Assembly (NCBI GenBank): GCA_010909165.1
Contig: MU008160.1
Coordinates: 620,001 to 684,000, forward strand
DNA length: 64,000 bases
Direction of reading: 5' to 3'
DNA from: Anthoceros angustus
Taxonomy: Eukaryota > Plantae > Anthocerotophyta
The translations under genes were made by a program, and so were the position numbers. Positions 6,299 through 46,600 of this stretch are shown here, piece after piece; positions within the stretch are counted from its first letter, which is position 1; each line of letters starts with the position of its first letter. Under the pieces are notes generated by a model. It ran no database searches and was not told where the DNA came from. It saw only the letters and a program-made list of their open reading frames with translations.

Positions 6299-6538
6299 GG
6301 TAAGGGTATTAAAGCCCAATATGCTTAGACTAATACACTTAGTCTAAGTTAGGTGTCGATTAAGTATCATTAGTTAGCTTGGAAGCTAATCACTAGGAAG
6401 CTTCTTGTGCTCCTTCCTTAGCTTCTTGTGGAGCCCTATTGGAGGTATAAATACCCTCAAGCCTCATCTCAATGTGAGAGAGCTACTCTTGCCTCCTCCT
6501 CTCCTCTCCTCTTCCACCATGGTGCCCACGATCCTTCA
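6299..6538 (+). repeat. Copia 5' LTR
   Basis: Direct repeat of 11161-11425; ends in CTTCA followed by the PBS. Confidence 0.9.
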
Positions 6539-6609
6539 AGCGGTATCGAGCCATGGTTTGGTTGTGTTGTGATGCTAGAATTTTCTAGCTGCGGGACGGC
6601 TCGTGGAGT

Positions 6610-7260: not shown

Positions 7261-7396
7261 GAGGTCGGGCGGTGGCGGTCGTCGAGCGATTCGGATTACT
7301 CGGTGGAGCGATCAGCGGCAAAATACCGGGCCACGGTGGTCTTCTTTGACTTTTCTAACAAGGCGAGTTGAGTGTTTAATGTATCGATTTTTGAGT

Positions 7397-10300: not shown

Positions 10301-11115
10301 GCGAGCCATATACTTGGCATGCGTATTCGTCGGAGCAGACATAAGCGTCGCTTTATTTGTCTCGAGACGGAATACATTAAGTGCTTCAACGTTTCAACAT
10401 GGAGAAGGAAGCCATTGGGTACTCCATTGCCTCCATATGTGAAACTTTCAAGCGCGGATTGCCCAAGCTACGAGGAGGACAAAAGCTGAAATGGAGAAGG
10501 TCCCATACTCATCATAGGGAGTTTGATGTATGCAATGATTGCTACGTCACGACATTGCCTTTGCGGTGGGAGTGGTTAGCGAGTTTATGTCAAACCACGG
10601 CAAGAAGCATTGGGAGGCGATAAAAGGAGTTATGAGGTAATGGTACAAAAGCTTTGTGCATATGTTTTGGTAGTGAAGATGCATGTGTGGTTGGGTACGG
10701 ATGCGATTATCACGGATATGGACAAAAGGAGGTCCACATCGAGTTATGTCTTCACGTGCCTTTGGAGGCGATCTCATGGCGATCTCGTTTGCGATCGTGC
10801 ATTCGCTATCTACCACAGTAGTATGTTGCGACAGCGAGGCTTGCAAGGAAGCCATATGGCTTGCTCGTTTAGTGGGAGACTTGGGGATCAAGGTTGAGTG
10901 CCGGTGTTGCATTGTGATAGCAGTGCTATCCAATTGGCAAAGAATCCGTGTTTCATGCGAAGACTAAACATGTGGATGTGAAGTATCACTTCATTCGAGA
11001 GGTGTTGGACGACAGAGGGTACAACTTGTCAAGGTTCACACTGACCGAACCCTAGATATTCTTACCAAGGGACTCTCTACAGCAATTTGCACAAGCTCGG
11101 ACAATGGGCATGAGA
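7397..11115 (+). pseudogene. gag-pol: Copia gag-pol polyprotein, fragmented by indels
   Basis: MFNIEKLDGTNF (gag); CHYCHKRGHFKKC zinc knuckle; WIIDS (protease); RLGHMS; DVCGPM..ASLGGASYFVTFIDDFSRKVWV (integrase); ARLVAKGFKQ and LILYVDDMLI (RT); DKRRSTSSYVFT, EACKEAIWLARL, FHAKTKHVDVKYHFIRE (RNase H). Confidence 0.93.
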
Positions 11116-11160
11116 TAGTCCATTCTCCTCTGAAGGTAAATTGGCCTTTAAGTGGGAGGT

Positions 11161-11425
11161 TGTAAGGGTATTAAAGCCCAATATACTTAGACTAATACAC
11201 TTAGTCTAAGTTAGGTGTCAGTTAAGTATCATTAGCTTAGCTTAAGCTAATCACTAGGAAGCTTCTTGTGCTCCTTCCTAGGAGCTTCTTGTGGAGCTTC
11301 CTAGGGAGCCCTATTGGAGGGTATAAATACCCTCCAAGCCTCATCTCAAATATAGTGAGAGAGCTACTCTTGCCTCCTCCTCTCCTCTCCTCCTTCCACC
11401 AGCATGGCTGCCCCACGATCCTTCA
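11161..11425 (+). repeat. Copia 3' LTR
   Basis: Starts TGTAAGGG right after the PPT and ends CTTCA. Confidence 0.92.
11322..11329 (+). promoter_or_regulatory. TATA box of Copia LTR (TATAAATA)
   Basis: Canonical TATAAATA, present at the equivalent position in the LTR copies at ~6447, ~18100 (-) and ~61384. Confidence 0.7.
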
Positions 11426-12300
11426 CGAGGTCAAGAAGTGCAGGGGGTGTGTGAGTCACCTTCTGCTTCTCGGGCATGCAGTGCGGATGGCACTTAGTAT
11501 CCGGTCATGGGCGTAGTTCATGAGTTTATTAGATCCTGCGGATGAGCCCATTTGTCTTCTCTGTCATTGGCCTTAGGATTGTAGGGTGCCGTCTTGCGAT
11601 GATTGATGCGAAATACTCCGTCATGGCGGCCACCACATCATTAAGGAAATGGGTTCCCCTATCACTTACCAAGCGGCGGACATCCGTGCGGGTTATGATG
11701 TTCTCGTCATTTGGCCACGGTATTTGCGAGTCCGTTCTTGTCGCCTCTACCACAGTGCGGTGGTCCGTTGCCACGGGATGTATCTCCTTTGTGTGTGTGT
11801 CTTGTCGTGGTCCAGTCCAACAAAGTCAATACCCCACTTTTGAAAGGTGCGGTGCCAATATCGGTACTAGCGGCCCAGTGTCGTCGGGGTTGGCTTTCCG
11901 ATCCGTGACAAGCATCACACTTCTTCTAAGCGGTGGGTGTCCCCATACATTGTTGGCCACCGGTATCCGCTTCAAAATCTTTTGGTGGTGACTGTCTTTC
12001 GTAGTGTCACCCCAATCCTTTGCATTCCCTTGGCTCCACATCTCTGCGGTTGCAAGTACCTTCGTTCTACTCCGTCCGGCCCTAATTTGAACACACACCG
12101 TTGTACATTACGAAGGGTCGAGCATAGTGCACGAATGCCTCCCTCATCCAGAGTGATTTTGAGCTCCATTCCCAGAGGTGCCTCTTTCTTCGTAGGTCGG
12201 ACGGCGGACCCTCCTTCTCACGCTAAGGCTGCAGTTCTCGTAGCTTGGGGTTCGTCTGGGCTCCTCCGGTTGTACTTTTCTGCGGATGAGACATTGGTTG

Positions 12301-13190
12301 CCGCAGAAAGTACAACCGAGGAGCCCAAATGACCGAACCCCAAGCTACGAACCGGCAATTAGTAGCGAGAAGGGAGGGTCCGCCCGTCCGACCCACGAAG
12401 AAATAGAGCGGTACCTGGGAATGGAGCTTCAAATCGACTCGTGGATGAGGGAGGCATTCGTGCACTATGCTCGACCCTTCGTAATGTACAACGGTGTGTG
12501 TCAAATTAGGGCCTGACGGAGTAGAACGAAGGTACTTACAACCGCAGAGAGGAGCGGCCGTCAAGGGAATGCACGAAGGATTGGGGTGGACACTACGCAA
12601 AGACAGTCACCACCAAAAGATTTTGAAGCGGATACGGTGGCCAACAATGTATGGGGACACCCACCGCTTGAAGAAGTGTGATGCTTGTCGGATCGGAAAG
12701 CCAACCCCGACGACACGGGCCGCTAGTACCGATATTGGCACCGCACCTTTCAAAAGTGGGGTATTGACTTTGTTGGACCTATACACCCACGACAAGACAC
12801 ACACAAAGGAGATACATCCCGGTGGCAACGACCATCGCACTGTGGGTAGAGGCGGTGGCAAGAACGGACTCGCAAATACCGTGGCCAAATTCTCGCACGA
12901 GAACATCATAACCCGCACGGATGTCCGCAGCTTGGTAAGTGATAGGGGAACCCATTTCCTTAATGATGTGGTGGCCGCCATGACGGAGTATTTCGCATCA
13001 ATCATCGCAAGACGGCACCCTACAATCCTAAGGCCAATGGGTCGACAGAGAAGACAAATGGGCTCATCCGCAGGATCTCGAATAAACTCACAAGTGAACT
13101 ACGCCCATGACTGGATACTGTCGCCATCCGCACTGTGCCTCCGATAGCAAGCAGAAGGTGACTACACACCCGACCCCTTACTTGACCACG
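12301..13190 (+). pseudogene. pol: Gypsy integrase, N-terminal and core (mirror of 11426-12285 minus)
   Basis: WPTMYGD..CDAC.RIGKP; PILAPAPFQKWGIDFVG; LVSDRGTHFLNDVVAAMTEYF; EKTNGLIRRILNK; interrupted by Copia in the PTPYL.YG motif. Confidence 0.92.
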
Positions 13191-16100
13191 TGAAGGATCG
13201 TGGCTCCGGGTGGAAGGAGGAGAGGAGAGAGGAGGCAAGAGTAGCTCTCACATTTGAGATGAGGCTTGGAGGGTACCTCCAATAGGCTCCCTAGGAAGCT
13301 CCACAAGAAGCTCCTAAGAAGGAGCACAAGAAGCTTCCTAGTGATTAGCTTAGCTAAACTAATGATACTTAATCGACACCTAACTTAGACTAAGTGTATT
13401 AGTCTAAGTATGGGCTTTAATACCCTTACAACCTCCCACTTAAAGGCCAATTTACCTTCAGAGGAGAATGGACTATCTCATGCCCATCTGTCCGAGCTTG
13501 TGCAAATTGCTCGTAGAGAGTCCCTTGGTAAGAATATCTAGGTTCGGTGTGAACCTTGACAAGTTGTACCCTCTTGTCGTCCAACACCTCTCGAATGAAG
13601 TGATACTTCACATCCACATGTTTAGTCTTCGCATGAAACACGGATTCTTTGCCAATTGGATAGCACTGCTATCACAATGCAACACCGGCACTCAACCTTG
13701 ATCCCCAAGTCTCCCACTAAACGAGCAAGCCATATGGCTTCCTTGCAAGCCTCGCTGTGCAACATACTCTCTGTGGTAGATAGCGAATAATGCACGATCG
13801 CAAACGAGATCGCCATGAGACGCCCGTGCGTGAAGACATAACTCGATGTGGACCTCCTTTTGTCCATATCCTCGCATAATCGATCTGTACCCAACCACAC
13901 ATGCATCTTCACTACCAAAACATATGCACAAAGCTTTTGTACCATTCGGATACCTCATAACTCTTTATCGCCTCCCAATGCTTCTTGCCGGTTTGACATA
14001 AACTCGCTAACCACTCCCACCGCAAAGGCAATGTCGACGTGTAGCAATCATTGCATACATCAAACTCCCTACACTGATGAGTATGGGACCTTCTCCATTT
14101 CACTTTGTCCTCCTCGAGCTTGGGCAATCCGCGAAAGTTTCACATATGGAGGCAATGGAGTACCCAATGGCTTCCCTTCTCCATGTTGAAACGTTGAAGC
14201 ACCTGTTAATGTATTCCGTCTCGAGACAAATAAAGTGACGCTTATGTCATTCCGACGAATACGCATGCCAAGTATATGGCTCGCCTCCCAAGTCTCATTT
14301 CAAAGTGAGCATTCAACTTTGACTTCAACGAAATCTCATCAAGATCGCTCAAAGAATTAGCATATCATCCACATAGAGGATCAAAATGAGCAAGCTTTGA
14401 TCCTTAGCTTGCTTCAGATAGAGGCAATGATCCTCATCCACGCTTGTAGAAAGCATAAATGAGTGGAACTTGTGATACCACTGGGTGCTGCTTTCAAACC
14501 ATAAAGGCTCTTCCTCAACCCGCACACCGATGCTCTTTGCCCTTCTCAACAAAACCTTCCCGCATGTAGACGCCCTCTTGAAGGTCACCATGCAAGAATG
14601 CTCTTGACATCCATCCGCAAGTTCCATATCATCTCGCAACCAAAGCAAGAACACATCGCAAAGTTGTCATTTTGACTAGGTGAGAAAATCTCATCAAAGT
14701 CAATGCCTGTTGTTGCTTGAAACCCTTAGCAACCACGGGCCTTGTACTTTGGTTTGCCATCATGACCTTCATCTTGTACACCCATTTGCACGTAGTGCCT
14801 TCTTATCCTTAGGCAACGGAACCAACTCCCAAGTTTGGTTCTTATGCAATAATCATTTTTGATCGCATGGCCTTCTCCCACTTGTCTTTGTTACTCGCTG
14901 ACAGAGCCTCTTTGTAAGAAGAGGGTTCCCAACTTCAAGATACATAATCCAGATGGATCATACCGCTGAGGTCGTGTAATCCGCCTCGACCACGGCACTG
15001 TGCACCTCTATAGGAGCTTGTTCGACTCTTGGTTCATCTATGGAGGAATGTGCTCCACATTACATATCAACCCCGCCCATGATGATCATGTCCATCTTCT
15101 TGGAAGATCACCCTTCGCACCTCCAGCTTGGAGTAGGCTTCCTGCATCTTGTTCTCATTGAAGAACACGTCTAGTACGAACAACCTTTCTAGCCTCCGGA
15201 TCCCACAAACTATCCCATCTCAATCACCATAGCCAAGAAAAATACATTTCTTGGACTTAGGTGCCAACTTGTCCCGAAACTCTTTTGGAACATGGCGATG
15301 CCTCATGCCAAACACTCGCAGATGCTTGTAGGATGGTTTCTTTCCGCACCATAGCTCCTCCGAACCTCATCAACTTTTATTAGGAGATCTGTTAATAAGA
15401 TGAACCGCAGAGACACCGCTCGCCCAAAACCCATTAGGCAATCCAGAGTTTGACAACAAACTACGCATCCTCTCGAATGGTTCTGTTTCATCCGCCACAC
15501 ACCATTTTGTGGAGGAGACAATAATTCTTTTGATTCCTTGGAATCAATGACCGGAAAGCTAAACATACTCCACCATTATCTCCTTAGACACTTCAATCGG
15601 TGGATCGATTCTCTACAAGGGTGACAAATTTCAAACACCGCCGAACTTCATCCTTTTTCCTCAAAGGATAAACCCACACCTTGCGTGAGAAATCATCTAT
15701 GAAAGTGACAAAATAAGAGGCACCGCCTAATGATGCAGAGGCATAGGTCCACATACCCGTGAACCAACTCAAGAGGTTTACTTCTACTTTACCTCGTTCG
15801 ATGTGATGATTTTGTCTGCTTCCCATATAAACAGTGCTCACACATCGAGAGATCGAGAAGTTAAGCAGTGGATATAACCGTAACGAGATAAAACCTTCAT
15901 TCCCTTCTCGAGACATATGTCCTAACCGCAATGCCACAAGGAAACATTTTTGCTCACATGATCACATGATCTTTGATGTGTTTACTGGTGAGTACAAAGT
16001 GCCACACTCGATCCACGAGCTAACACAAGAGAACCTTTGGAGATCTTCCAAGAGTGATCCCCAAACCAAGAAGTAACCAGATCATCCAACCGTCTCGCGC

Positions 16101-18259
16101 TAATCATGCTCTTTGTCAACTTGAACATGCCTAACGCCCTTCAAAGATGAATGAAGATCCGTTGTCAAACTTGAGTTGCACATCACCCACGCTGCGATCC
16201 GCATGCATAGTTATTTCCAAGCCTAACGCATCCTTTCCTTGTAGCATCATACGTGTTAAACCACTCTCTATGAGGAGTAACATGGAAAGATGCACCGAGT
16301 CAATTATCCAATTGCGTAATAAATGACTATCCACGGTTAATTAAAGATTCAAGTAAGAAGAGATAAGGACATCTCCGTCCTCAACGTAGTTTAACTCTTC
16401 CAACCGATGCAAAGTCGCCTTCTTGTCTCCGCTTCTTCTCTTTCCTTGGTCCTTTTGAACTTCTCGCACTCTCTTTTGAAGTGACCCTTTGTGACAATAG
16501 TGACACTCCACATTCTTGTTACGACTACGAGATTTGCTACGAGAAAAGCTTCCGTTGCTTGCTTCCCTTCGCAGCGTGGACCTCCCTCTCACTATGAGGG
16601 CACGGAACCTTTGGAAGGTTCCATGTTTTTCCTGCTCACCTCCTCGCCAATGTGCTACCTTCTACATTTACAATGGTAAGACCACTAGCAAAGGCAATTA
16701 CTCGAGTGCACGAAGGTATCCCAACTCTCCGTAATGTGACCATGAAACATAGCTCTCACTAACTGGGAACGTGATACCTTGAGATGAGAGTCGGCTGAAA
16801 ATGGTATTGAAATCATTCGGATGATCGGACATCCTCGTCCCTTCCTTCATCTTCAAGTCCACCATGCTTCAACCAATACACCGAGAAGCCGCACTTTGCT
16901 TCTCATACAGTCATACGCCATCCGTAACTCGTGGTCTTATCTTTCACATTGAAGTACACCGCTTTTGACAATGTTAGCATGATAGTAGATCTAGCAAGCT
17001 CATCCAGTCCCGCCACTCATCCCGTCATACTATCCGGTTTGACGCCTAACAACTTTATGGGCTTGATCTTTTCGCACTAGAACATTATACACTTGTTCTT
17101 TCCGAACGGGAAGTTAGTACCATCTAACTTCTCGATATTGAACATGACGCTTTCGATGATGAAGACATCATGACTCAAAAATCGATACTGATAAAACACT
17201 CAACTCGCCTTGTTAGAAAAGTCAAAGAAGAAAAGCCACCGTACGGTCCGTGTCTTTTGCCGTTGATTCCACCGAGTAATCCCAATCGCTCGACGATCTC
17301 GCCACCGCGCTGCACTCAACCGCGGCCGCCACGCCCGCCGGCCCCGCCCCGCCACGCACCGCGCCACCGCGCGCCCGCACGCCACCGCCGCGCCCGACGC
17401 ACGGCGCGACGCGCTGCCGGCGCCGGGCGCGCACCCCCGCTGCGCGCCACGCTGCGGCCAGCCGCGCGCCGGGCGGGCCGCGGCCAAGGCTGCGCTGCGG
17501 GCGCGGCGCAAGGCCTGGGCCCCTGGCTGCGCCCCGCCGCCGCGCCGGCCCGGGGCCTCGGCCGGGGCGCCGCGCCGCGCTGGCCCGGGGCTGCGCGCGC
17601 GCCGGCCGTGGGCGCCGCGCCCGCTGGGCTCGCCGCGCACGCTGCTCGCGCGCGCCGCGGGCGCGCGCTGGGCCGCGCCGCGCGCGGGCCGGCCGGCCTG
17701 CGCGCTCAAGGCCCGCTGCGGGCCCCGCTCGCGGCCCCGCGCCGCGCGGCCCCGCGCCGGCCCGCGCCGCCCCGCGCCGCGCCCGCGGCCGCCGCTGGCC
17801 CGCCGCCCGCCGCGCTCCGCGGCTCGCCGCCTGCGCTCGCCTGCGGTCCGCACGGCCTCGCCGGCCGCCCGCCCGCGCGGTCGCGGCTTGCCCACGCCTC
17901 ATCCGCGCGCGCGCTGCGCCCTCGCCGCGATCGGATCACCCCACGAGCTGCCGCCCCGCAGCTAGAAAATTCTAGCATCACAACACAACCAAACCATGGC
18001 TCGATACCGCTTGAAGGATCGTGGGCAGCCATGGTGGAAGGAGAGGAGAGGAGGAGGCAAGAGTAGCTCTCTCACATTGAGATGAGGCTTGGAGGGTATT
18101 TATACCTCCAATATTCCCTAGGAAGCTCCACAAGAAGCTCCTAGGAAGGAGCACAAGAAGCTTCCTAGTGATTAGCTTAAGCTAAACTAATGATACTTAA
18201 TCGACACCTAACTTAGACTAAGTGTATTAGTCTAAGTACATTGGGCTTAATACCTTACA
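13191..18259 (-). mobile_element. Mirror copy of the Copia element
   Basis: LTRs 13191-13430 and 18012-18259; same domains on the minus strand; flanks CCACG / CACG. Confidence 0.94.
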
Positions 18260-18680
18260 CACGGACACTCCCGTAATGCCGAGAGTTTGAAGTGCCCACT
18301 TTCGAGTAATGATGGAAGGGAGATCCGAGGAGGAAAGCCAACTCGGCGACTCTTGGGGTTTGTGCAAAGGTGAGGATGTGGAAGAAGCTCAAATTGAAGA
18401 TGCATTGGTAAAACCAGAAGATTTGCACGATCGCCGATCATGAATCGAGTATGTAAAGGAAGGGGACCGCCCTCCTTTATGATAGTCACACATGCATTTT
18501 CTGCAAACTTCACCGAGATGGATGGGTCCGTATCAAGTGGTGCAAGTATATGACAACGGGTCCGCCCAGCCACGACACTAGATGGAGAGCTGCCCACTCA
18601 AACGGGTGGTGAAGAAGATATCATGCTTAGTGTTGGCGGAGACGCCAATGTATGAGAAGGGGAGTATGTGGGCGGTACTC
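18260..18680 (+). pseudogene. pol: Gypsy integrase C-terminus (continues 13190 across the Copia insertion; mirrors ~5880-6298 and ~60810-61228)
   Basis: MPVEFEVPT motif (ORF 6097..6285-), then a degenerate FPGKLH..GP region. Confidence 0.8.
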
Positions 18681-21600
18681 GGGAGTTAGGAAATAAGTAG
18701 GGTTTCGCTTTTTTTAGGATTGAAGGATAAATAAGGCGGAAAGGAGGAATAAATTGGGGTAGCGCCGGACGAGGCTGAGTACTCCGGACTGAGTGAACAA
18801 CGGACCTTTGTACCACTATGGAAGCCCGGACTACGCCGGAGTAACGGATAAGTCCGGAACCCACCCGGTCAAGGATAAGTACGCCAGGAAAGTAACCCAG
18901 GAGGGGGCGTGAGGATGACGCAGGCGGGGCGCCACGTGAGTGGCGGAGGTCGCATGCAGTGAGGCTGACCGAACCGCCGGTTATAAGGGTATTCACGCCC
19001 CAAGGGCGGGCGTAGCGCCGGAAGCGTAGGGTCGTAGGGCGTAGCCATGCACCCACGAGGGCGCCTTCCCGCCTAGAAGCTTCTACAAGCTGGCAAGGAG
19101 CAGGAGGTCATCGCGCAGCCCATCCTCGAGCGGTCTCTCCCCCAGCGGGGCAAAAGAGCTGTTCCTGACCTCACCTCCTCCGAGCCCAGAAAGAGGGCAA
19201 AGGAGTTAGAGGCGAGGGCCAAAGAGGGTGAGACCGGACTACCACTGGACCCGAGGGTCCCGATGACGAGTCCACCGACTTACTCCGGATCATGGTATGG
19301 AGGTCCTTATCGAGAAATGCCGCTCCACCACGGACTTTGTGGGGGCCTCACAGCACGCCGTGGAAGAAACACGCGAAGTCCCGCCATATTATGGACGGAA
19401 TGCTTTGGGGTCTCGTGTGGCCAAATGGAGAAGACCTGTGGAAGTGGAGGCCACCCGGAGGAGGATGGTGGAACCCAAGAGCAAGTGAAGGCCGAGGGGC
19501 AAAGGAAAGTGGAGTCCCCGCCGATCGAAGGAAACGGGTGGCGGAAGAGGCCCGAGGCGAGAGAGCTCGACCGCGGAGGCGGCCCGCCAGAGAAGCCGCG
19601 CAAAGGCGGCGAGTGAAGCCGGGCAAAGAGCGACCGGGATCACTGACGGATCGAACCGGTGGAAAGAGTCGACAGTACCGAGAACCTGGCTAGACAAAGG
19701 CTATGGAGGCAGGCGCACTCGGGAGATAGGGATCTCGAGCACACCGCAGAGAAGGAGGCGGGCATGGAGGACAAAGAAGGACACGCCGAGCTACAACCCA
19801 AGATGCGCTTGAGAAGCAGTGATTCTCAACGAGAATCCACGACTCGAGCAAAAGAGTAAGCCCGCCCGTCTCAAGACGGAGGAAAATCGCCATCATCCAA
19901 GGAGTTGGACGCTGCGTGAGCCGGAGGAAGTCCTGGACGGAGGTATCTCACCGCCTGGAGAGGGAGCCGGAGCTAAAGGCCGAATGAACGGAGGAGCGCG
20001 AGCACGAAGGTAAAAGAAGCCGCCGTCCACCGAAAGGCGGAAGGGAACGCCGCTATGGCGGTAAGCCGGGCGGAAAGGAAACGACGGAGCCGGAGCAGTG
20101 AGCAACAGCTGCAATGCAGGAGGTGACCGAGGCCGCCTTGTAGCCTCGCGTGATACGCCTGCCACCGCCAACCGGCAGGAGAGGTGGCCCAACAAGCCGA
20201 AAAGACGCCTCGAACACTTATGGCGGAGGGAGTATCGGTGCCCGCACACGTGGAAGAGGCAATTCAACAAGTCGATCTGCACTTTGCCTATTACCACGAG
20301 CCCGGGCGAGAAGCCTCGACTCAGAAACGGGACGGACCTCGGAAGGCCTGTGGAAGGAGATGAAGGCCACGGGAGACAGTGACCCTAGTGGCCTGCTTGA
20401 GATGACGGAGCGCGGAGAGGAGCAACCGGAGGAGCAACGAGGGAGCGGATGCGATCGAGGTAAGCACCCCGACCTCACCATGGAAGGAGGGGCCAACGGC
20501 GAGTCAGGCGATCGGGAACAGGAGGACTGAGGAGAGCCACGGAGGAGTCCTGTGAGGGAGGAAACCCGGTGATGGAGTCCGACTTTGTCCGGACGAGGGG
20601 AGGCGACCGTCCACCCCAGAATAAGTCCGACCAAGTCCGACTACAGTCCGACCTCAAGTCCGGACTGCACAACTGACCCCGAGGTCCGGACCCCGCAGAC
20701 AAGGTCGGACCTAGCCGGCCGACCTGTGAAGCCGGACTCGGGTTCGTGAGTCGAGAGACCTCGAGGACCGGGCCGCGGCAAGAAGGAGGAGCCCCTCGAC
20801 TTACGCTAGGGGAGCCGAGGGTGGCCCCACCGCTGGACCTGGAGGCCAGTGAGAGGTAACGGGCGTCGATCACGCAGAGCCCAACCCGGCATTCCGGAGA
20901 GGAGGGGCCCGCCACGGATCATCCGATTGCACCACAACCTGTGACGGGGATTGACCACCCATTCCGAGGGCCTGTGGACCTTCTTCTACCGAGATAGGGG
21001 AGAAGATGTAGGCGTCGATTAGGGTATACCGAGCTGGCTATCACCGTAATAGGGTGTAATAAAGACGCCACCTTGGGCGCAGATAAGAGGGCCGAGGCTG
21101 TAGTAAAGCATCTTTCTTGGTGTTGATGCCTGCCTGCACCTTGTGAGTCTTCACAACGTGAGTCCCGAGTCACCGAAAGGTGCACACCCGGAGATTGATC
21201 AAGGTCCCGTGACGGACTTAACGCTGTGGTGTGCAGGAAGGTGATCACGACCGTGCTCGTCCGAGCCGCGTCCGCACCGAATGGACTGAACGCGGAGCCG
21301 GAGGAACTGGAGGTGTGTAGAGCCTGACGAGAGGCCCGCGGAACGGAGGAGGTCCGGATCAGAACGCCCTTTTTTCTAAGATCAAGAGAAGTGAGGAGAG
21401 AGGAAAGGACCGGATGCGTGAGGATGTATGAACGATACGGACGAACGGTCTAAACGCTTGGCCATACCGGCCCAGACGGTGAAACGCAGAGTAGTTAGAG
21501 TATGTGTGTGAGTTGAGACCTAATAGCGCTAAGGATGAGAATCACCCGAACGCGTAAACGGGGCCTATCATTCCTTTGGAACGGACTTCTTCCTACAACG

Positions 21601-23553
21601 CGACGGATTGTGCGCTACTGCTGGCCATCAAGAAAAGTCACAAGGCCCTTGCAGAGGACCTCTCCTATTGAAGACCTCCTTGTCGGAGGATGCCTGTGGC
21701 CTTTGGAATCCTTTCCTTCGCTTTTGCTAGGCGCCTGGTACCTCATTCAGACGCCGCCTGCCTGGCCCTTTGTCCCGGCCCGGGTTTGATAATAAGATTA
21801 TGGATACTCTTGGGGACATCTGGGCCTGGGGCTTTTGAGTGCCTGGGGCGACTGCTCACCGGGCAAGCATCCCCGCCTGCAATTTGGAGGCGAGGATCGC
21901 CTCATCGAGGTCTCTTCCCACGGCTTGGGGAGTTGGGCCCTCCGCCTCGCCTTGGCTTCCTGCTTCATCCTCCATGACAAGCCCTTTCTCGAGGATCTCG
22001 ATCAAGTGTGAGGAGGGAACCTTCTCCAATCGCCCTGAGGCAGCGTAGACATGTTATCGCAGATGCTCTAAGGACTTCCTCCTTTCTACATTTATCATCG
22101 ATGGCTTTAGGGATTGTGTGCATCTCGCCGAGAAGCCTCGGCCAGCTTTTCCGCCCTCCGTGACCCTCCATCTCTGTGTCCACTAGAGCGCCCTTTTGTT
22201 CGGAAGGGAGTGTGTTGGCCACCGCCCGCCCATGCATACGGGATTTCACATCGCACCAACCACCTTCACTATCGCGATGCGATCTGCCTCGCCTACTCCA
22301 CCGGCAGGGCTTCTTCGCCTCACTTGTGAGTGCGGCTCGCCTGACGCCTCGTGTCCACCTTGCTCGTTGTCCCCACGGGTCATCGCCACACCATGACGCC
22401 ATCCGTGACGCCATGTTTGCCATTGCTCGCGAAAGTGGCTATATGGCCCGGAGGGAGCGGAGTATACTCTTCTTACGTCGCTCAATCGGACTTATACCTT
22501 GTCCGTGGCGACTGTGTGTGGTGGCGGATGTAGTGGTTACACGACCGACGTGACGCCACCTCCGCCTGTGTCATCACCAACCGCCCAGCGTGCCGCTGCA
22601 GCCGCCTCTCAAGGTCCGCAAGAGCAGGATGCAAGCGGGCCACCTTTTATCCCGCTTGCTCTAGAAACGATGGCAATGGTCGAGGACTTTGACAAATCTA
22701 TCAAGTCTTGTGCCAAAGCTACCATGCAGCAGTATAGTGTGGCGTCTCCTGTGATCACAAAGATACTCCGGCTGGTTTATTGTTTTCAGCCGCCTCAACG
22801 GATTCTCCATGGCGACGGTGGTGATGCCTTCCTCTGGTTTGCTGCGCTTATTCTACCTGTGATATGACATTGTGGTGCAGCTTGGTCACTTTAGGGAGCA
22901 TTCTCTTCACTCACCCCGGGTCCCCATTTGTTGTCCTTCCTAGATGGTCTCTTTCCATCGTTCTTCACCTCAAGTAAATCATCTTCATAAATGGCCTCCA
23001 ATCATATTTTTTGGGTTTATTAATAAATATCTTAGATAATAATAATAATATTTGGAGAAAAAGGCTTACAAGCGTAATCTACAATAAATATCATCTTTTT
23101 TAAAAGCCTTTTCTCAAAATTTGTTCTTTATTTTGAAGAAATAAAGAACAAATTTTGAGAAAAGGCTTTACAACGTAATCTACAACAAGGGAGCCACGTC
23201 ATCGCATGTTGTAAATGGCTTCCAATCATATTTTTGTGATTAGAGATGTTAATAAAGATTTTAGAAAATAAAGATCAAATTTGAAAAAAGCTTTACAACG
23301 TTATGACAATGGAGAGCCATCATGAATGTTGTTGTAAATGAGCACCCAAAAGAGTGCCACATCATCCAACTAGAAACCCGTCAGAACCGAGTCTTAAAAC
23401 TTGCCACACCAAATGAAACTAAACCAATTTATAACGGAGGTGTTTAGAGTCAGAAGATTGGGAGATTTGCAAAGGGTTTTGTAAAACACCTCTCCCCGGT
23501 AGTGGTTGGAGTCCTGAGGAGGAGCCGGAGTAGCCGCTCAGGACGCCTCAACC

Positions 23554-24510
23554 ATGAGTGGAGGAAGGAGGTGGGAGTCGACCCCATAGCCGCCAAAGAA
23601 TATGTAAAATTTGGGGAGAATAACGAGGTGAAGACGCCAGGCTTTTGTGTGAACTTTTGAACATGTGTCTCATGTAAATTTAGAAGCCTCAGGTCATAGG
23701 TCTCGAATTTTTCTGAGTGCTTCAAAGTCATGCACTCGGTATAGTCGTACCTATGGGGCTGCACTCACCACCGATTGGGATGATTTGAAAGCTGCATTTT
23801 AATTATGTGGCCCGAAGAGTTATGCATCACACGCCGGCTGAGGACTTTGAAGAGGAGGGAACCTTTGTATGATTATGTAGAAAGGATTTATGGTTCCTTG
23901 GAGAGAGTACCACCACGATCGCTGTATATGTAGCTTTCACAAAGCAAGGCCTATGATATGAATTTTCTGATAAAGGTTCGGATAGCATAGGTTGGAGTCA
24001 GGGAACGATGTAGATCCAAATGCCATAGAAGACTTAGAGCTAGAATCGGCAAGGTAAAGATTTCAAGAATGAGAGATGGAAGAGTTTAAGAAATTGGGAA
24101 GCAGGATGTGAATGCGATTTTATTTCTCGTGTGAAAACTAGAGAGCGGATTGTGGCTATACAGATTTCATGACAAGGAGTTGAGGAGACCACGATTGGAA
24201 GGAGAGGGTCATGAGCAAAGTACAAGTGTGATTGAAGTTGTACGGCAAGAGGTGCAAGGGAAGGGCCAAGTGTCCATAAACGCAGGTTTGTGGTTTGGTT
24301 GCATGTAATAATCTAAGAGTTCAAGATGAAGTAAAGGAGCATCAACGGTGGAGGACAGGAGTGCCTTTTAGGGTGAGCAATCGAGGGCGTAGTGGGAGTG
24401 CAAGTGGCGATGGTGGCAAGAGCGATGGAGAAAAAGAAATCACTTTGGAGAAAGGAAAAGCGGCATGCAAAAATGGTGTCTGGGAGGTACGTGAGCTGGA
24501 GCCGGAGCAA
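23554..24510 (+). pseudogene. gag: Same gag in the mirror arm; abuts the LTR of element B (also ~54978-55934 minus)
   Basis: Reverse complement of 1-783 plus downstream continuation. Confidence 0.7.
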
Positions 24511-24553
24511 GGATGGCTTAGTGTGGCGCCGACCGGACGCCAGCGCACAATCC

Positions 24554-27500
24554 TGTCAGAAGGAGTCCGTTCCCAAGGAATGATAGGTCGCTTGCTGCGC
24601 TTCGCGATTCTTACTTCACTTTGCGTCCTCGCCTTCAACGCATACATTCGCCGGGCCGCGCATCTAATACTCGCAACGTTTCACCGACAGGCCCGTGTGG
24701 CCAAACGCTTAGGACGTCATGAGACGCTCACGTTTCACTTGCACCTCTAGTCCGCTTCTTCTCCACTCACACTACATCTACCTTAGGAAAACGCGCTACC
24801 GGCCCTCACGGCCTCCGTCCGGCCCACGCCTCGAGTCCTCCACCACTGCCCGTTGATTCACCGCTTTGACGAATTCACGGGTCCGCCACCCTTCTCTACA
24901 CCACCATACGTTAGGGTCCGCTACCGTAACCTTGATCGCCTCTCCGGTCGCGTGCTCGCCAGTGACTCAGACTCACGTTAGCAAGAAGACGACAAGGGTC
25001 AAGAAACGCCAGATCACCAAGAGAAAGATACTTTAGAGTGCCTCACTCTTATACTGCCGGAGGTCGGCGCTTTATTACATTTCTATTCGAGCCGTGGCTC
25101 AAGACGCCTTAATCGCCGCCTACCATCCTATTCCTCCCTCCTATCTCCTTCTTCGGCTGGAAGGTCCCGGTTCACTGGATTGGTGGTCCAATCTCCTACC
25201 GACAAGGCGCACAATCGGATGATCCGGGGGACCCTTCCTCTTCCCGAATCTCGCCGTTGTTACCGGCGGCGGTCGACCACCGCACATTACAACGCTGCTT
25301 CTCGCCCCAAAGGTCCCTCCTAGGGGCCACCGACTGTCGCTTCCCCAACGTAAGCCTGAGGGGACTCCTCTCATTTCGAGTCCGGACCGAGGTCCGGCCT
25401 CGACCCCGAGTCAACTTGAGTCGCCTTCCCCGAGTCCGGCCTCACTGGGTCCGGCTCATCTTCGGGGTTCGACCTCAAGGTCCGATCACACGGGTCCGCC
25501 CCAAGCTCCGACCCTTACTCGGACCTCATCGCTAGGTCCTCATCCTTCCCACCGACCCTTGTCTTGGGTCGGCTTCCTCCTTCCACTCTTCAAGGCCCCC
25601 GCCTATCTTCCCGAGCAGTGCTGCGCCGACTTACCGGGTTGTATCGGCCGCTGCCCCGCCTCCTCGATGCTCTTCTCCCCGCTACTGCCTCCAAACAGGC
25701 CACTAGAGTCCCTGCCCATGCCCTTCATCCCTTCGAGCCTTCCAGGGTCCGTCGAGCGGCCGAGGTCGCCAATGTCTTAAGGAGCTCAGCGTGGTAATAG
25801 GCAAAGTCCGAATCAACTCCGAATTGCCTCTTCCACGTGTGCCCGAGCACCCGATACCCCTTCGCCATAGGTGCCCGGGCGGCCCCGCTTGTTGGGCCAC
25901 CGCCAGTTTGATTGGAGCCGGGCAGACACGCGAGGCTACAAGGGCGGCCTGCCCTCGCACCGCCGCCGCTGTTCACCGCTCAGCCCCGCTGCTTCCGCCC
26001 GCTAGCTTACCATAGCGCAGCTGCCCTTCCGCCTTTCTCAATCGGACCAGAATTTTTCTCAAGGCCCAGCGCTCGCCTCCTCCGCTCATTCCGGCCGTTA
26101 ACTCCGCCATCTCCTCTCCAAAGTGGGCAACTCGCTCATGCGGCCTCGCCTGTGTCCTTCTCCATTTCGCGACGCCCCGCCTCGCTCCATCGCCGCATTC
26201 CTCCGCCCGTGAGCCGAGCTTATTTCTCGTGATCCGCGATCACGCCCGCAGACTACCATTCCTCTCAATGGTAACTTGAGCCGCAGCCTGTGGTCTCCTT
26301 GGTCTTCCATCTCCGCTGGCGTTCCACCACAATGAGACCGAGATCCTCCATCTCCTTGCTCGGCTTCCTCCTCCTGCATGGCTGGCCTGCACTGCCCGCC
26401 GCCTCGCCTCTTCTTCAGTTAGCAGCTATCCTCGCTGCCTCCTCCACCGGGTTCCGATCACGCGATAGTGATCACGGGCCTCTTAGCGCCCGCCTTTGCC
26501 GCTTTCACTGAGCCGCCCATTTGGCGCCCGGGTCCGCCGCCCGCCAGTCACGAGCTCCGCTTGCGCCCGGCCTCTTCGCCTCCCGCCGCGCTTACTCCTC
26601 CGCTCAGAGGTCTTCCGCCTGCTTGGGCCTCCTCAGGCTCGCCACCGCCACCCACTGAAGGAATTTAGTCCGTCCCGCTTGATGGACCACTTCCTCTCGG
26701 CCTCCCTGCTTCTTCTCGATGCGGCCGAGCTTCGCCTTCCTCCTGCCTCCCGGCCTCCAACCGCCTCCCGGAGGAGCACCATACGCCCGGTGGCTTCTAC
26801 CTCCGGGTCTTCGGCAGAGACCCCAAAGCATACCGTCCATGACGAGCTGTGACCCGCCGTGTTTCTTCCACGGCCACATCGTGAGACCCCACAAAGTCCG
26901 TGAGGGAGCGGGCATTTCGGTCCGCCAAGGACCTCCATACCGCAGTCGAGTAAGTCCGACTGGGTTCGACCTAATCAGACCCTTAGGTCCCGAGTGCCGA
27001 GCTCCCGAGCCACCTCCTTGGCCCTCTTGGCCGCCAGCCTTTATTTGCCCTCTTCGCCTGGGCTTGAGGTGAGGGGTCCGGAGCTAGCCTTTGCCCCTTC
27101 CTGTCGGGGACAGATCGACTGGCGGCCGCTGACCTCGCTCCTTGAGCGCGGGCCCTTTCTCGCCTCCCACCGCCTCTTCACCTCACTGCAAGGGGTAAGG
27201 GCACCGCACCGCCCGAGGTGCTGGTAGACGCTGCCTTGCGCTTCCCGCCGAGTCCGGCGGGCTCGGCTGTCGGCTGGGCACGGAGCCGCAACCGCCAACT
27301 CCCTCCGCTGCTCCTCCCGCCGCTGGTTGCTCCGAGGAGGCACGGAGAAGGGAAGCGGGATTTCTTCCCATACTTCCTGGGTGGTGAGGGGGTCCGCTCC
27401 AGACGTATGGAGTCCCAATCCTCCCGCCCTCCTCCCGGTCCGCTTTGGCCTTAGGGGGTCGGCCCCCACCTCGGGCGCCTTGCACGCCCACTTCCCGCAG

Positions 27501-28765
27501 GCCTCCACTTCCGAGCGCCCGATCTCTCTCCCTCCTTCAGAGCTCAAATGTCCCCATACATGAATGTATGGGGATGCCCCGATGGCGAGGGCTTCGCCTC
27601 ACCATGGCCTGACGAACCGGGCGAAGATAATCCTTCCTCACCCGCCTCTTCCCCGTAACGCATGCTGAATACTAACAATTATCACCAAGGTGATCCACCT
27701 TGGTGAGCGGTGTTCCAATGGACAATGATCCACGCTTACTCTACCGTCAAGGTCCGATATCAACCATTGGTTGTCCGCCGCGGCTCCTGTGCCCTGGCGC
27801 TGGCGCCCTATCTTTCCCTTCGCCTTGAGGGGCTCGAACCACGCCTTCTTCCTCCTTTGGGCGGTTGTAGGTCGCCTCAGACCTCCAAGGTCCATCGCCT
27901 AGATCCTCCCGAGGTTCTTGACCGAACCTCCTTGTTGGCCGCCAACATCTTCCCGGCGAACTCCCGACAGAGCGACATCAAACGTCTGCACTGAACACAT
28001 CCAAGTGCCACTGACTAATCCGCTTCCTCCACCAGGCCCAAAGTCCGGATAGCGGGTCACAATGTTGCGCCTACTGTGTTCCATGGCTCCTGCACCTCCG
28101 CAGCCTTTTGGGTGCCATCGCCTTTCTTCTCCCTCGGCCGAGCCGCCGGCCGAGTCCGCACGAGCGCGCCTCCGCTGTCACGCCCAACCCGACGGAGCCG
28201 AAGATGCTCTCAAAGAGATAGCGCCAGAGAGCCGGGTTGGAGCGCAAGAGACCGCGAATTGTCTCGAGGTCCAGAAATGACCTCCTCTTCGGCCGCGCTG
28301 GAGTAACCGGGCGGAAGGCGCCTCTTCCCTCGTCAGAATCGCGAGGTCTCGCATGGCTTACTCGACCCACGCCCGCTTACTCGCCTTACGCCACAGATTG
28401 CCTTACGCTGCTCGGGCGTGAATACCGCTATAACGGCCTGCAAGGCTACCCGACTCGCTGCATGCCCGACCTCCACTGTGGCCCACGTGGCGCCGCTTAG
28501 TCCTCTCACGACTCAACTTCTAAGTTACTTTCGGGCGACGATTTATCCTGCTTTTGACCCGAGTGGGTCCGGACTTATCCACACCGACGTAGTCCGTGCT
28601 CGCCATGGTGGTCCGGCACGTTGCCCACCGAGTCCGAGTATACTCCGGAGTCCACCGAGCGCCATCCGTGCTTATTCCTCCTTTTCCGCCTTATTTTACT
28701 ATTCCAACCTACCAAAAACAAAGCCCCACTTAATTCCTACCCCCAAGGGAAGTCCATAGCCCACA
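24554..28765 (-). mobile_element. Gypsy element B: second, diverged family member; 3' LTR (24554-25204) plus 3' region; truncated at the end of pol
   Basis: Colinear similarity to 2864-5885 (e.g. GTAATAGGCAAAGTCCGAATC, GTGAATACCGCTATAACGGC). Homology ends at CATAGCCCACA ~28755-28765. Has ~1.15 kb (27170-28320) that element A lacks. Confidence 0.75.
25700..28330 (-). pseudogene. Putative additional ORF of the Gypsy family (same sense as pol), helical/charged, unknown function, frameshifted
   Basis: Peptide blocks shared by A and B after frame correction: MEVL.EKC.S.TDFVG.S..AVEETR and AHVEEAI..VDSDFAYYH.ELLK. Confidence 0.45.
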
Positions 28766-32856: not shown

Positions 32857-35800
32857 ATGGGCGTCGTAACGGCTGGAACCGTGAGCATGTCAGCAGGGGA
32901 AGCTTCTGAGGCCGTTGGAGCCCTGGAATCTCTGGCGCAGACAGACTCCCTATTTCTCAGTCTCTGTTTTACACTGTGCTAAACTGTGTACAGCTAAGAA
33001 GGATCTGGTTGTGGGCGACGAGTTCATGATCTCACTGTCAAACTTGGGTACGAGTCGAATGCATACTTGGGGAACCATATCTTGCGCATGTATGCATGTG
33101 GAGGTAGGCTGCAGGAGGCCATGGATGTGTTCACCAGGGTGGGCAAACCAGATGCCTTCATGTGGTTTCCATAATCTCTGCATATGCTAAGCATGGGAAA
33201 CCTAATGAGGCCATACAACTGTACCATGAGATGCGTAGGTCAGGAGTGAAGGCGGATGCTCACGTCTTTGTAGCTGCCCTTCAAGCTTGTGCATTTGCCG
33301 CCGACGAATCTGGCAGAAAAGTGCACTGTGATGTGTGTGGCATTCCTCCTGACTTGTTTGTTGGCAACTGCCTGTGGACATGTATGCAAAATGTGGCGAA
33401 CTGAAGATGCACGCCAGGTGTTTGACAGCATGGCACGGATGTGGTGACATGGAATGCCCTGATATCTGTATGCAAAATGTGGTGAACTGAAAGATGCACG
33501 CCAGGTTTTTGACAGCATGGCCAAAGGATGTGGTGACATGGAATGCCCTGATTGCTGGGTATGCAGCAAGGACTCGGACATGAGGCACTTGTTCTGTATG
33601 GACAAATGGAGCAGGAGGGCTGATTTTGGCTAACCATGTTACTTTTGCTTGCCTTCTGAAGGCCTGTGCAAGCACTGGTGCCTTACAGAAGGGCAGGCAG
33701 CTGCACACCTGATTGTCGAAAGAGGACTGCTGGATAACATAGTGTTGTGCAACTGGTGGACATGTATGCAAAATGTGGTGAACTGGAAGATGCACGCCAG
33801 GTTTTTGACAGCATGAACAAAGGATGTGGTGACATGGAATGCCCTGATTGCTGGGTATGCAGCAAGGACTTGGACATGAGGCACTTGTTGTGTATGGACA
33901 AATGGAGGAGGGGGCATTTTGGCTGACCATGTTACTTTTGCTTGCCTTCTGAAGGCCTGTGCAAGCAGTTTTACAGAAGGGCAGGCAGCTGCACTCACAG
34001 ATTGTCAAAAGAGGACTGCTGGATAACGTAGTGTTGGGCACCTGCCTGGTGGACATGTATGCAAAATGTGGTGAACTGGAAGATGCACGCCAGGTTTTTG
34101 ACAGCATGGCCACAAAGGATGTGGTGACATGGAATGCCCTGATTGCTGGGTATGCACAGCAAGGACTTGGCCAAGAGGCGCTTGTTGTGTATGGACAAAT
34201 GGAGGAGGCAGGCCTCATTTTGGCTGACCATTACTTTTGCTTGCCTTCTGAAGGCCTGTGCAAGCACTGGTGCCTTACAGAAGGGCAGGCAGCTGCACTC
34301 ACAGATTGTGGAAAGAGGACTGCTGGATGATGGTGTTGGGCACCTGCCTGGTGGACATGTATGCAAAATGTGGTGAACTGGAAGATGCACGCCAGGTTTT
34401 TGACAGCTTGGCCACAAAAGGATGTGGTGACATGGAATGCCCTGATTGCTGGGTATGCACAGCAAGGCTCAGAGAGGCTTGTTGTGTATGGACAAATGGA
34501 GCAGGAGGGCCTCATTTGGCTGATGTTACTTTTGCTTGCCTTCTGAAGGCCTGTGCAAGCACTGGTGCCTTACAGAAGGGCAGGCAGCTGCACTCACAGA
34601 TTGTTGAAAGAGGACTGCTGGATAACGTTTGGTGGGCACCTGCCTGGTGGACATGTATGCAAAATGTGGTGAACTGGAAGATGCACGCCAGGTTTTTGAC
34701 AGCTTGGCCATAAAAATGTGGTGACATGGAATGCCCTGATTGCTGGGCAAGGACTAGAAGGCGCTTCTTGTGTATGGACAAATGGAGCAGGAGGCCTCAT
34801 TTGGCTGACCATGTTACTTTTGCTTGCCTTCTGAAGGCCTGTGCAAGCACTGGTGCCTTACAGAAGGGCAGGCAGCTGCACTCACAGATTGTTGAAAGAG
34901 GACTGCTGGATAACGTAGTGTGGGCAACTGCCTGGTGGACATGTATGCAAAATGTGGTGAACTGGAAGATGCACGCCAGGTTTTTGACAGCATGAACACA
35001 AAGGATGTGGTGACATGGAATGCCCTGATATCTGGGTATGGTACTTGTGATGATGGTCACAGAGCACTAGCTTGTTTTGAGGAGATGCGGGTTCAGCCTG
35101 ATGGTGCTACTTTTACTTGCCTTTTAGCATGCAGTCATGAGGACTGGTCCAGGGTCGCAAGCACTTTGATTCCATGGCTGAACAGCATGGCATCAAACCT
35201 ACTATTGAGCATTACATTGCATGATTGATCTTCTTGGGCCATTTAGATGAGGCAGAAGATGCTATTTCATGTGAGGCCAAAGTAATGTTGTGGGCTTGAC
35301 GTCTTTGTTGAATGCCTGCAAAAGTCACGGGGATATAGAGGGCGATGTGGTGTTTTGAAAGCATTGTTAGGCTGGACCTCAGGGGCGTCTATATGTGCTC
35401 ATGGCCAATGCCTACGCAGATGCAGGTAGGTGTGGACCGATGTAGACAGGATTGAAACACAGAGAAGGCAGCAGGAGCTAACAAGAAACCTGCAGTGGCG
35501 ACCATTGAGGTGAATAAGCAGGTACATAGATTTCTGGTGGGAGAAAGGAGAGAGGATATTGCTTAAAGGTAGAGAGCACGAATGCACGTCTGAAGCAGGA
35601 AGGAGGCGTACCTCACACAAAGTTGGTGTTGAAGCCACTGTGTGAGAAGGAAAAGGAAGATGCGCTTTGTGGGCATGCTGAGAAGCTAGCTCTGGCGTTT
35701 GGTCTGTTGAACACTCCAGTGGGACACCTCTGGTGGTAACGAAGAATCTACGCATGTGCAGTGACTGCCACAGTTCCACGGAGATCATGTCAAGGCTTGA

Positions 35801-35867
35801 ACAGAGGGACATTGTTGTAAGGGATGGGTACCGTGCATCGATTCGCAAATTGAAGGGTCGACCGTGA
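32857..35867 (+). CDS. PLS-class PPR protein with E1-E2 and DYW:KP (GRP-ending) deaminase domain; candidate organellar U-to-C RNA editing factor; frameshifted in this sequence (read error or pseudogene); start codon uncertain
   Basis: Repeated P (VVTWNALIAGYAQQG), L (HVTFACLLKACASTGALQKGRQLHSQIVERG) and S (VLGTCLVDMYAKCGELEDARQVFD) motifs. P2/L2/S2 at ~35005-35280; E1 NVVGLTSLLNACKSHGDIE; E2 YVLMANAYADAG; KKPA at 35483; GHAEKLALAFGL at 35671; LRMCSDCH at 35748; KGRP-TGA at 35853-35867. Reconstruction needs several frameshifts. Confidence 0.92.
33500..35000 (+). repeat. Five near-identical tandem P-L-S coding units (~290-300 nt each as written)
   Basis: GACATGTATGCAAAATGTGGTGAACTGGAAGATGCACGCCAGGTTTTTGACAGC recurs at ~33760, 34052, 34354, 34650 and 34939. 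Confidence 0.93.
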
Positions 35868-39400: not shown

Positions 39401-39648
39401 CTCCTCTTGCATTATAAAAGGTGATTGTATTTCTTGCATTAGAACTTTCTTCAAAGTCTAATCTATAATCAAAAGTATCAAGGTAGTTGTGGTGGCCTAC
39501 ACGCTTGGTGATGGTGAGTCGTTGATGTTGTAAGAGCCTTGTGTTGAGAAATGTTTGAAACCCATAAATCGCTAGTGTACACAATCGTGGCTTTTTTTCT
39601 TACAATGTTTTGGTTTTCTAATCCTCAATTTCCTAACAATTTTCTTTG

Positions 39649-39839
39649 CATCTTTTTAATTGCAAATGATTATTGTTGCCTATATGCCAAGGAATCTCCA
39701 AAAGTATACAAAGAACCATTGTATCTATGAGAAGATGCATGCGTGGTTACAATGCTCATAAATGAGATACATAGGATAATCATTTGAATACTTGATGACA
39801 TATTGAAGAATATTTTCTCCATCTTTTAAAGAAAACATC
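39649..39839. other. 191-bp spacer at the axis of the giant inverted repeat
   Basis: Complementarity stops at G39648/C39840 (C39649 faces C39839). AT-rich. Confidence 0.95.
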
Positions 39840-43620: not shown

Positions 43621-46600
43621 TCACGGTCGACCCTTCAATTTGCGAATCGATGCACGGTACCCATCCCTTACAACAATGTCCCTCTGTTCAAGCCTTGACA
43701 TGATCTCCGTGGAACTGTGGCAGTCACTGCACATGCGTAGATTCTTCGTTACCACCAGAGGTGTCCCACTGGAGTGTTCAACAGACCAAACGCCAGAGCT
43801 AGCTTCTCAGCATGCCCACAAAGCGCATCTTCCTTTTCCTTCTCACACAGTGGCTTCAACACCAACTTTGTGTGAGGTACGCCTCCTTCCTGCTTCAGAC
43901 GTGCATTCGTGCTCTCTACCTTTAAGCAATATCCTCTCTCCTTTCTCCCACCAGAAATCTATGTACCTGCTTATTCACCTCAATGGTCGCCACTGCAGGT
44001 TTCTTGTTAGCTCCTGCTGCCTTCTCTGTGTTTCAATCCTGTCTACATCGGTCCACACCTACCTGCATCTGCGTAGGCATTGGCCATGAGCACATATAGA
44101 CGCCCCTGAGGTCCAGCCTAACAATGCTTTCAAAACACCACATCGCCCTCTATATCCCCGTGACTTTTGCAGGCATTCAACAAAGACGTCAAGCCCACAA
44201 CATTACTTTGGCCTCACATGAAATAGCATCTTCTGCCTCATCTAAATGGCCCAAGAAGATCAATCATGCAATGTAATGCTCAATAGTAGGTTTGATGCCA
44301 TGCTGTTCAGCCATGGAATCAAAGTGCTTGCGACCCTGGACCAGTCCTCATGACTGCATGCTAAAAGGCAAGTAAAAGTAGCACCATCAGGCTGAACCCG
44401 CATCTCCTCAAAACAAGCTAGTGCTCTGTGACCATCATCACAAGTACCATACCCAGATATCAGGGCATTCCATGTCACCACATCCTTTGTGTTCATGCTG
44501 TCAAAAACCTGGCGTGCATCTTCCAGTTCACCACATTTTGCATACATGTCCACCAGGCAGTTGCCCACACTACGTTATCCAGCAGTCCTCTTTCAACAAT
44601 CTGTGAGTGCAGCTGCCTGCCCTTCTGTAAGGCACCAGTGCTTGCACAGGCCTTCAGAAGGCAAGCAAAAGTAACATGGTCAGCCAAATGAGGCCTCCTG
44701 CTCCATTTGTCCATACACAAGAAGCGCCTTCTAGTCCTTGCCCAGCAATCAGGGCATTCCATGTCACCACATTTTTATGGCCAAGCTGTCAAAAACCTGG
44801 CGTGCATCTTCCAGTTCACCACATTTTGCATACATGTCCACCAGGCAGGTGCCCACCAAACGTTATCCAGCAGTCCTCTTTCAACAATCTGTGAGTGCAG
44901 CTGCCTGCCCTTCTGTAAGGCACCAGTGCTTGCACAGGCCTTCAGAAGGCAAGCAAAAGTAACATCAGCCAAATGAGGCCCTCCTGCTCCATTTGTCCAT
45001 ACACAACAAGCCTCTCTGAGCCTTGCTGTGCATACCCAGCAATCAGGGCATTCCATGTCACCACATCCTTTTGTGGCCAAGCTGTCAAAAACCTGGCGTG
45101 CATCTTCCAGTTCACCACATTTTGCATACATGTCCACCAGGCAGGTGCCCAACACCATCATCCAGCAGTCCTCTTTCCACAATCTGTGAGTGCAGCTGCC
45201 TGCCCTTCTGTAAGGCACCAGTGCTTGCACAGGCCTTCAGAAGGCAAGCAAAAGTAATGGTCAGCCAAAATGAGGCCTGCCTCCTCCATTTGTCCATACA
45301 CAACAAGCGCCTCTTGGCCAAGTCCTTGCTGTGCATACCCAGCAATCAGGGCATTCCATGTCACCACATCCTTTGTGGCCATGCTGTCAAAAACCTGGCG
45401 TGCATCTTCCAGTTCACCACATTTTGCATACATGTCCACCAGGCAGGTGCCCAACACTACGTTATCCAGCAGTCCTCTTTTGACAATCTGTGAGTGCAGC
45501 TGCCTGCCCTTCTGTAAAACTGCTTGCACAGGCCTTCAGAAGGCAAGCAAAAGTAACATGGTCAGCCAAAATGCCCCCTCCTCCATTTGTCCATACACAA
45601 CAAGTGCCTCATGTCCAAGTCCTTGCTGCATACCCAGCAATCAGGGCATTCCATGTCACCACATCCTTTGTTCATGCTGTCAAAAACCTGGCGTGCATCT
45701 TCCAGTTCACCACATTTTGCATACATGTCCACCAGTTGCACAACACTATGTTATCCAGCAGTCCTCTTTCGACAATCAGGTGTGCAGCTGCCTGCCCTTC
45801 TGTAAGGCACCAGTGCTTGCACAGGCCTTCAGAAGGCAAGCAAAAGTAACATGGTTAGCCAAAATCAGCCCTCCTGCTCCATTTGTCCATACAGAACAAG
45901 TGCCTCATGTCCGAGTCCTTGCTGCATACCCAGCAATCAGGGCATTCCATGTCACCACATCCTTTGGCCATGCTGTCAAAAACCTGGCGTGCATCTTTCA
46001 GTTCACCACATTTTGCATACAGATATCAGGGCATTCCATGTCACCACATCCGTGCCATGCTGTCAAACACCTGGCGTGCATCTTCAGTTCGCCACATTTT
46101 GCATACATGTCCACAGGCAGTTGCCAACAAACAAGTCAGGAGGAATGCCACACACATCACAGTGCACTTTTCTGCCAGATTCGTCGGCGGCAAATGCACA
46201 AGCTTGAAGGGCAGCTACAAAGACGTGAGCATCCGCCTTCACTCCTGACCTACGCATCTCATGGTACAGTTGTATGGCCTCATTAGGTTTCCCATGCTTA
46301 GCATATGCAGAGATTATGGAAACCACATGAAGGCATCTGGTTTGCCCACCCTGGTGAACACATCCATGGCCTCCTGCAGCCTACCTCCACATGCATACAT
46401 GCGCAAGATATGGTTCCCCAAGTATGCATTCGACTCGTACCCAAGTTTGACAGTGAGATCATGAACTCGTCGCCCACAACCAGATCCTTCTTAGCTGTAC
46501 ACAGTTTAGCACAGTGTAAAACAGAGACTGAGAAATAGGGAGTCTGTCTGCGCCAGAGATTCCAGGGCTCCAACGGCCTCAGAAGCTTCCCCTGCTGACA

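Follow-up and report, generated by a model that had tools for sequence, protein, structure and literature searches.

A contig that runs through a stretch of DNA and then back through the reverse complement of that stretch raises the question whether the chromosome carries such a palindrome, with the genes in it doubled, or whether the palindrome arose during sequencing and assembly. We addressed this question in a window of 64,000 nt, which is the whole stretch of DNA analysed here and is plant-like nuclear DNA. By direct comparison, positions 15489-39648 (+ strand) are the reverse complement of positions 39840-64000 (- strand), forming a mirror pair of 24,160 nt. The sole mismatch between the two arms is a 1-nt homopolymer difference at position 17230, with AAAA on the left and AAAAA on the right (near 62258). 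The arms are separated by a spacer of 191 bp (39649-39839). The preliminary description had reported a near-perfect palindrome with a 191-bp spacer and one 1-bp homopolymer difference, and this is confirmed by the direct comparison. Mirrored coordinate pairs of the arms sum to 79488 or 79489. The left limit at 15489 is merely the exact mirror of the window end at 64000, indicating that the arms are clipped by the window and that, as had also been proposed, the repeat is not bounded within it. The right arm leaves the window at its end, and the part of the locus at 12301-15488 (+) has, according to the mirror geometry, its right-arm partner past that end. A chance or low-complexity origin of the palindrome is excluded by an exact mirror of 24 kb.

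The spacer, around which the sequence turns, is AT-rich and has no second copy within the window. BLAST pairing of the arms reaches 8 nt into it, joining 39649-39656 with 39832-39839, where six of the eight positions are paired and two are mismatched. The predicted folding of the spacer was no better than that of shuffled sequence (z = -0.89), and no palindrome was found inside it. A special structure or a repeat origin of the spacer was rejected, since its fold is at the level of shuffled sequence and no further copy occurs in the window. In addition, a 25-nt direct repeat with 76% identity was observed, with one copy at the boundary between left arm and spacer (39635-39659, AACAATTTTCTTTGCATCTTTTTAA) and the other at the right end of the spacer (39806-39830, AAGAATATTTTCTCCATCTTTTAAA). 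This repeat is possibly due to chance in AT-rich DNA.

Self-comparison of the window revealed a second fold-back. Positions 1-12285 (-) mirror 12301-24270 in one colinear alignment of 12,702 columns with 82% identity, and the alignment extends as far as a loop at 12286-12300, about 15 nt long, which places the turn at about 12293. A locus of 27.4 kb, running from about 12293 to 39839, is written out three times in the assembly, and its arrangement, which can be read directly from the sequence, is a zigzag: reversed copy 1 (1-12285), which exits at the window start, is followed by forward copy 2 (12301-39839), which contains the left arm, and by reversed copy 3 (39840 to beyond 64000), which is the right arm. 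Copies 1 and 3 are direct repeats of each other, and copy 2 is inverted relative to both. No clean microhomology was found at either junction, that of the 191-nt loop or that of the loop of about 15 nt. Small loops and the lack of clean microhomology are the form expected of a polymerase strand switch or snap-back, which may take place in a library molecule or in the cell.

A switch in the cell would leave a real chromosomal structure. Triplications of the DUP-TRP/INV-DUP type form by template switching and consist of three copies, the middle one inverted, with two breakpoint junctions, and the zigzag resembles them in its three copies, the inverted middle copy and the two junctions. The window might hold a real and very recent inverted duplication of the chromosome, or a triplication of this type if copy 1 is counted, whose copies were collapsed to one consensus; we regard this as unlikely. 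Fold-back priming, template switching at a break, or breakage-fusion-bridge could have produced such a duplication, and the PPR-DYW gene in the arms would then truly be present in two or three copies, which is equally unlikely. In its most specific form, two strand switches, with loops of 15 nt and 191 nt, would have very recently duplicated or triplicated a 27.4-kb hornwort-like nuclear segment with a PPR-DYW gene of the reverse-editing type, and the product would have persisted as a near-perfect palindrome with a short spacer; this form seems to us distinctly improbable. The evidence that bears on these possibilities comes from the differences between the copies and from the quality of the arms.

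Over the 12,702 columns of their alignment, copy 1 and copy 2 differ by 1122 mismatches and 712 indel events. Transitions and transversions are about equally frequent in the three BLAST blocks (135/142, 205/255 and 20/13), and the gaps are overwhelmingly of 1-2 nt, mostly of 1 nt. Of the 1-nt indels, 44-46% lie beside an identical base, compared with a background of 48%, so they are not enriched at homopolymers, which argues for random indels and not for the homopolymer slips that remain after consensus polishing. Identity is 66-80% in the GC-rich part and 88-94% close to the turn. Real divergence in plants shows many transitions and few indels. Because the indels between copy 1 and copy 2 rival the mismatches in number, transitions about equal transversions, and the gaps are mostly of 1 nt and not bound to homopolymers, the differences are best read from their pattern as random read error and not as evolution. 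The same spectrum of mismatches and indels rules out copy 1 as an old biological inverted repeat. Copy 1 resembles little more than one poor read. In contrast to a DUP-TRP/INV-DUP triplication, therefore, one copy here differs by noise of the read-error type only.

The arms themselves are also noisy, and four lines of evidence bear on this point, three of them from inside the arm: the repeat units of the PPR-DYW gene, the long terminal repeats (LTRs) of a retrotransposon, the counts of missing bases, and the homopolymers. The left arm carries a heavily frame-broken PPR-DYW gene of the PLS class at about 32998-35864 (+), recognized by Pfam matches to PPR, PPR_2 and DYW_deaminase on its pieces. 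Its mirror at 43624-46490 (-) has mirrored open reading frames (ORFs) and, in keeping with the arm identity, identical frame breaks. The gene switches frame every 60-100 bp. It includes 5.3 PLS units in tandem, each about 296 bp long, at 33467-35029 (+), with the mirror at 44459-46021 (-), and these units can be compared with one another. Five of them, 288-302 bp long, were aligned in 307 columns, and 37 of the 266 ungapped columns are variable. The alignment contains 22 gap runs in 1475 bp, 17 of which break the frame, and 60 of about 1535 bases are missing; the gaps fall at differing sites despite the same local sequence context.

A second internal comparison is provided by a Copia-type LTR retrotransposon of about 5.1 kb at 13185-18259 (-), which was recognized by its LTR direct repeat and by integrase and gag matches. 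The integrase (rve) match lies at 15596-15961 (-), and the copia gag match was found among the ORFs. The LTRs are about 250 bp long (13185-13430 and 18006-18259), and mirror copies of the element lie at 6300-11431 (+) and from 61229 (+). Both LTRs of the arm-side element and their mirrors in copy 1 were placed in a four-way alignment. Some bases are missing from an arm-side LTR although its mirror partner in copy 1 and the sister LTR both have them; examples are TTTATA, absent from the LTR at 13185-13430, and TA and a further 3 nt, absent from that at 18006-18259. The former has 11 singleton missing bases and four substitutions; the latter, which lies inside the visible arm, has at least four singleton missing bases and several multi-way gap columns. 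No column of the four-way alignment splits the arm pair from the copy 1 pair. Decay of the PPR-DYW gene to a true pseudogene was considered as a source of the frame breaks and is unlikely, since the arm lacks bases that are kept by copy 1 and by the sister LTR.

The counts of missing bases agree in direction. Over the whole alignment of copies 1 and 2, 732 bases are missing from the arm copy (copy 2) and 417 from copy 1; when only the visible arm is considered, the counts are 610 and 315, respectively. In addition, homopolymers of five or more are depleted in comparison with a first-order expectation (7 observed against 36 expected for C5, and 10 against 27 for G5), and the longest ones are nearly absent from the whole window (1 against 15 for C6 and longer, and 0 against 9.5 for G6 and longer). 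This depletion points to compression of the nanopore type, and reading frames on this contig are not trustworthy. Taken from these comparisons within the sequence, the error of the arm would be roughly 2-6% and would consist mostly of scattered deletions outside homopolymers.

The scattered errors of one arm are repeated base for base in the other, with one difference per 24,160 positions. If two arms had been read independently, with an error of about 3-5% each, well over a thousand differences would be expected over this length, as are found between copy 1 and copy 2. The observation that noisy arms show a single difference implies that they are one sequence determination, laid down in both orientations. 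It had been claimed earlier that frameshifts of the error type are identical in both arms, and this is correct, as the arms match base for base; it is also the fact on which the interpretation mainly turns. Separate sequence evidence for each arm is the hallmark of a genuine palindrome, and it was not found here, because the arms share scattered errors at the percent level. The assembly evidence for the palindrome is the junction 39839/39840 alone, and that for the other turn is the junction at about 12293 alone.

These results can be set against what is known of genuine large palindromes, such as those of ampliconic regions of sex chromosomes, and of fold-back inversions from breakage-fusion-bridge, in which the arms have independent sequence and many molecules span the junction. 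The present structure is like them in its kilobase arms with more than 99.9% identity, its short unique spacer and the doubling of the genes in its arms; it is unlike them in that the arms share random errors and thus are without independent support. A real duplication might still be printed in this form, since identical arms are also printed when an assembler merges the two halves of a true inverted repeat into a single graph edge. The unique 191-bp spacer is of ordinary genomic composition, and its edges carry short, imperfect inverted repeats of the kind known from fold-back inversions; both features would suit a real duplication. Meanwhile, a search of the window for a nanopore adaptor, using a 25-nt pattern and allowing up to three mismatches, gave no match, including at the turns. 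This also favours a real duplication, although the test is a weak one in noisy sequence. The sequences of the 15-nt and 191-nt loops are not adaptor-like. A missed PacBio hairpin adaptor was set aside on loop length, as the loops measure 15 and 191 nt and such an adaptor would be a single one of 45 nt.

Against a real duplication stand the scattered errors shared by the arms, which leave it without independent support, and the third copy (copy 1), which differs by error-like noise only and is as poor as if it came from few reads. A real clonal structure at full depth should give three copies of equal consensus quality, because reads coming in from both sides should polish all of them equally. 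Moreover, a long perfect palindrome with a short spacer is unstable, while nanopore ligation libraries commonly contain fold-back chimeras.

We therefore consider it probable that the palindrome arose during sequencing and assembly, through fold-back chimeric long reads, and that the PPR gene is not truly doubled. The preliminary description had preferred a fold-back chimera with a single consensus over a real inverted duplication, and three results support this preference: the arm is noisy, its noise is copied exactly, and a second fold-back lies 27.4 kb away with arms whose differences follow the pattern of sequencing errors. The window has the make-up of such a chimera in that a sequence is followed by its own reverse complement across spacers of 191 bp and about 15 nt, the arms share their errors, and copy 1 differs from copy 2 in an error-like manner. 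The arm errors and their exact duplication are direct observations; we infer the origin of the turn-arounds, in chimeric reads as opposed to the chromosome, and the assembler step by which the arm would have been mirrored.

The turn-arounds, with loops of about 15 nt and 191 nt, would be the strand-switch junctions of fold-back chimeric long reads, and such reads could pull the assembler back and forth through one locus. A contig that takes one turn must turn again to regain its original direction, which would explain why the turns are paired. Copies 2 and 3 would have been built on common evidence, that is, on the same reads or the same graph edge used in both orientations, and would share every error for this reason. 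Copy 1 would have been built on other and poorer read sequence; a read running from copy 2 into copy 1 would explain why copy 1 is the poorest copy. We rejected a simple path of miniasm along one read and back along its reverse complement, since it predicts noisy arms beside the spacer, contrary to the data. A graph edge that was collapsed, or a single read set from which both arms took their consensus, would fit better.

Published observations on long reads are consistent with this scheme. Inversion artefacts of the fold-back type are frequent in nanopore reads, to the point that whole samples have been discarded for them (10.1101/2024.07.25.604944), and in one ligation library 3.17% of the reads were chimeric (PMC8495745). 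In a study of plant plastomes, palindromic nanopore reads that had not been split gave palindromic contigs (PMC7092973), and palindromic reads may be nested (Pacasus paper, PMC6218980). Base calling worsens past an inverted junction (PMC7229812), and the poor quality of copy 1 fits such a loss. R9 nanopore reads were the basis of published hornwort assemblies of similar size, which used either miniasm, racon and Pilon (PMC8075897) or wtdbg and Pilon (PMC7027989). The zigzag is like fold-back chimeric reads in that a first part is followed by its reverse complement with a short spacer or none, in its multiple turns, and in the degraded quality past the junction. It is unlike the reported cases, which mostly concern DNA from whole-genome amplification or long-range PCR or concern single reads, in that it lies inside a long contig and in that two of the three passes are identical base for base.

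The two turns also recall another kind of molecule, a linear DNA of 27.4 kb with hairpin-closed ends, that is, a dumbbell, either an extrachromosomal fragment or a closed library molecule, that was read round repeatedly. Two fixed turns 27.4 kb apart with small loops are the geometry of reading a closed dumbbell. However, each independent pass round such a molecule would bring errors of its own, but passes 2 and 3 are identical, and the loop sizes are unequal (15 and 191 nt). The content is, moreover, that of ordinary nuclear DNA, namely a PPR-DYW gene, a Copia element and GC-rich repeats. No genes of a replicon or virus and no telomere-resolvase gene were found in the window; Pfam found PPR-DYW and Copia gag and integrase matches, and the other ORFs were without match. 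We regard a dumbbell as extremely improbable.

The distinction affects how the locus is to be annotated. If the palindrome is an artefact, as we think, about 37 kb of the window (copy 1 and copy 3) are redundant, the PPR-DYW gene and the Copia element are counted two or three times, and any biology of hairpin RNA, gene doubling or palindromes that is inferred here is spurious. A real palindrome would add a new bryophyte example of inverted duplication by template switching, and would be a rare case of a long palindrome with a short spacer that is tolerated in a plant nucleus.

Some features of the locus may be noted apart from the question of its origin. The PLS units of the PPR-DYW gene are about 90% identical in DNA, and are closer to one another after the error-like gaps have been discounted. 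The similarity of the units suggests a very recent internal tandem amplification of PLS triplets, which would be unusual for PPR arrays. In the LTR alignment of the Copia element, five columns split the 5' from the 3' LTR and do so consistently in both readings, which indicates that the element is young and its LTRs are non-identical. Positions 17000-28000 and their mirrors are GC-rich (56-63%), with a strong strand skew and many overlapping ORFs on both strands; in Pfam scans, the minus-strand and GC-rich-region ORFs at 17-30 kb gave no match. The GC-rich stretches at 17000-28000 show the poorest agreement between copy 1 and copy 2 (66-80%). Short internal repeats were also observed, in that 25656-26123 resembles 4033-4520 and 25790-25901 resembles 20183-20298.
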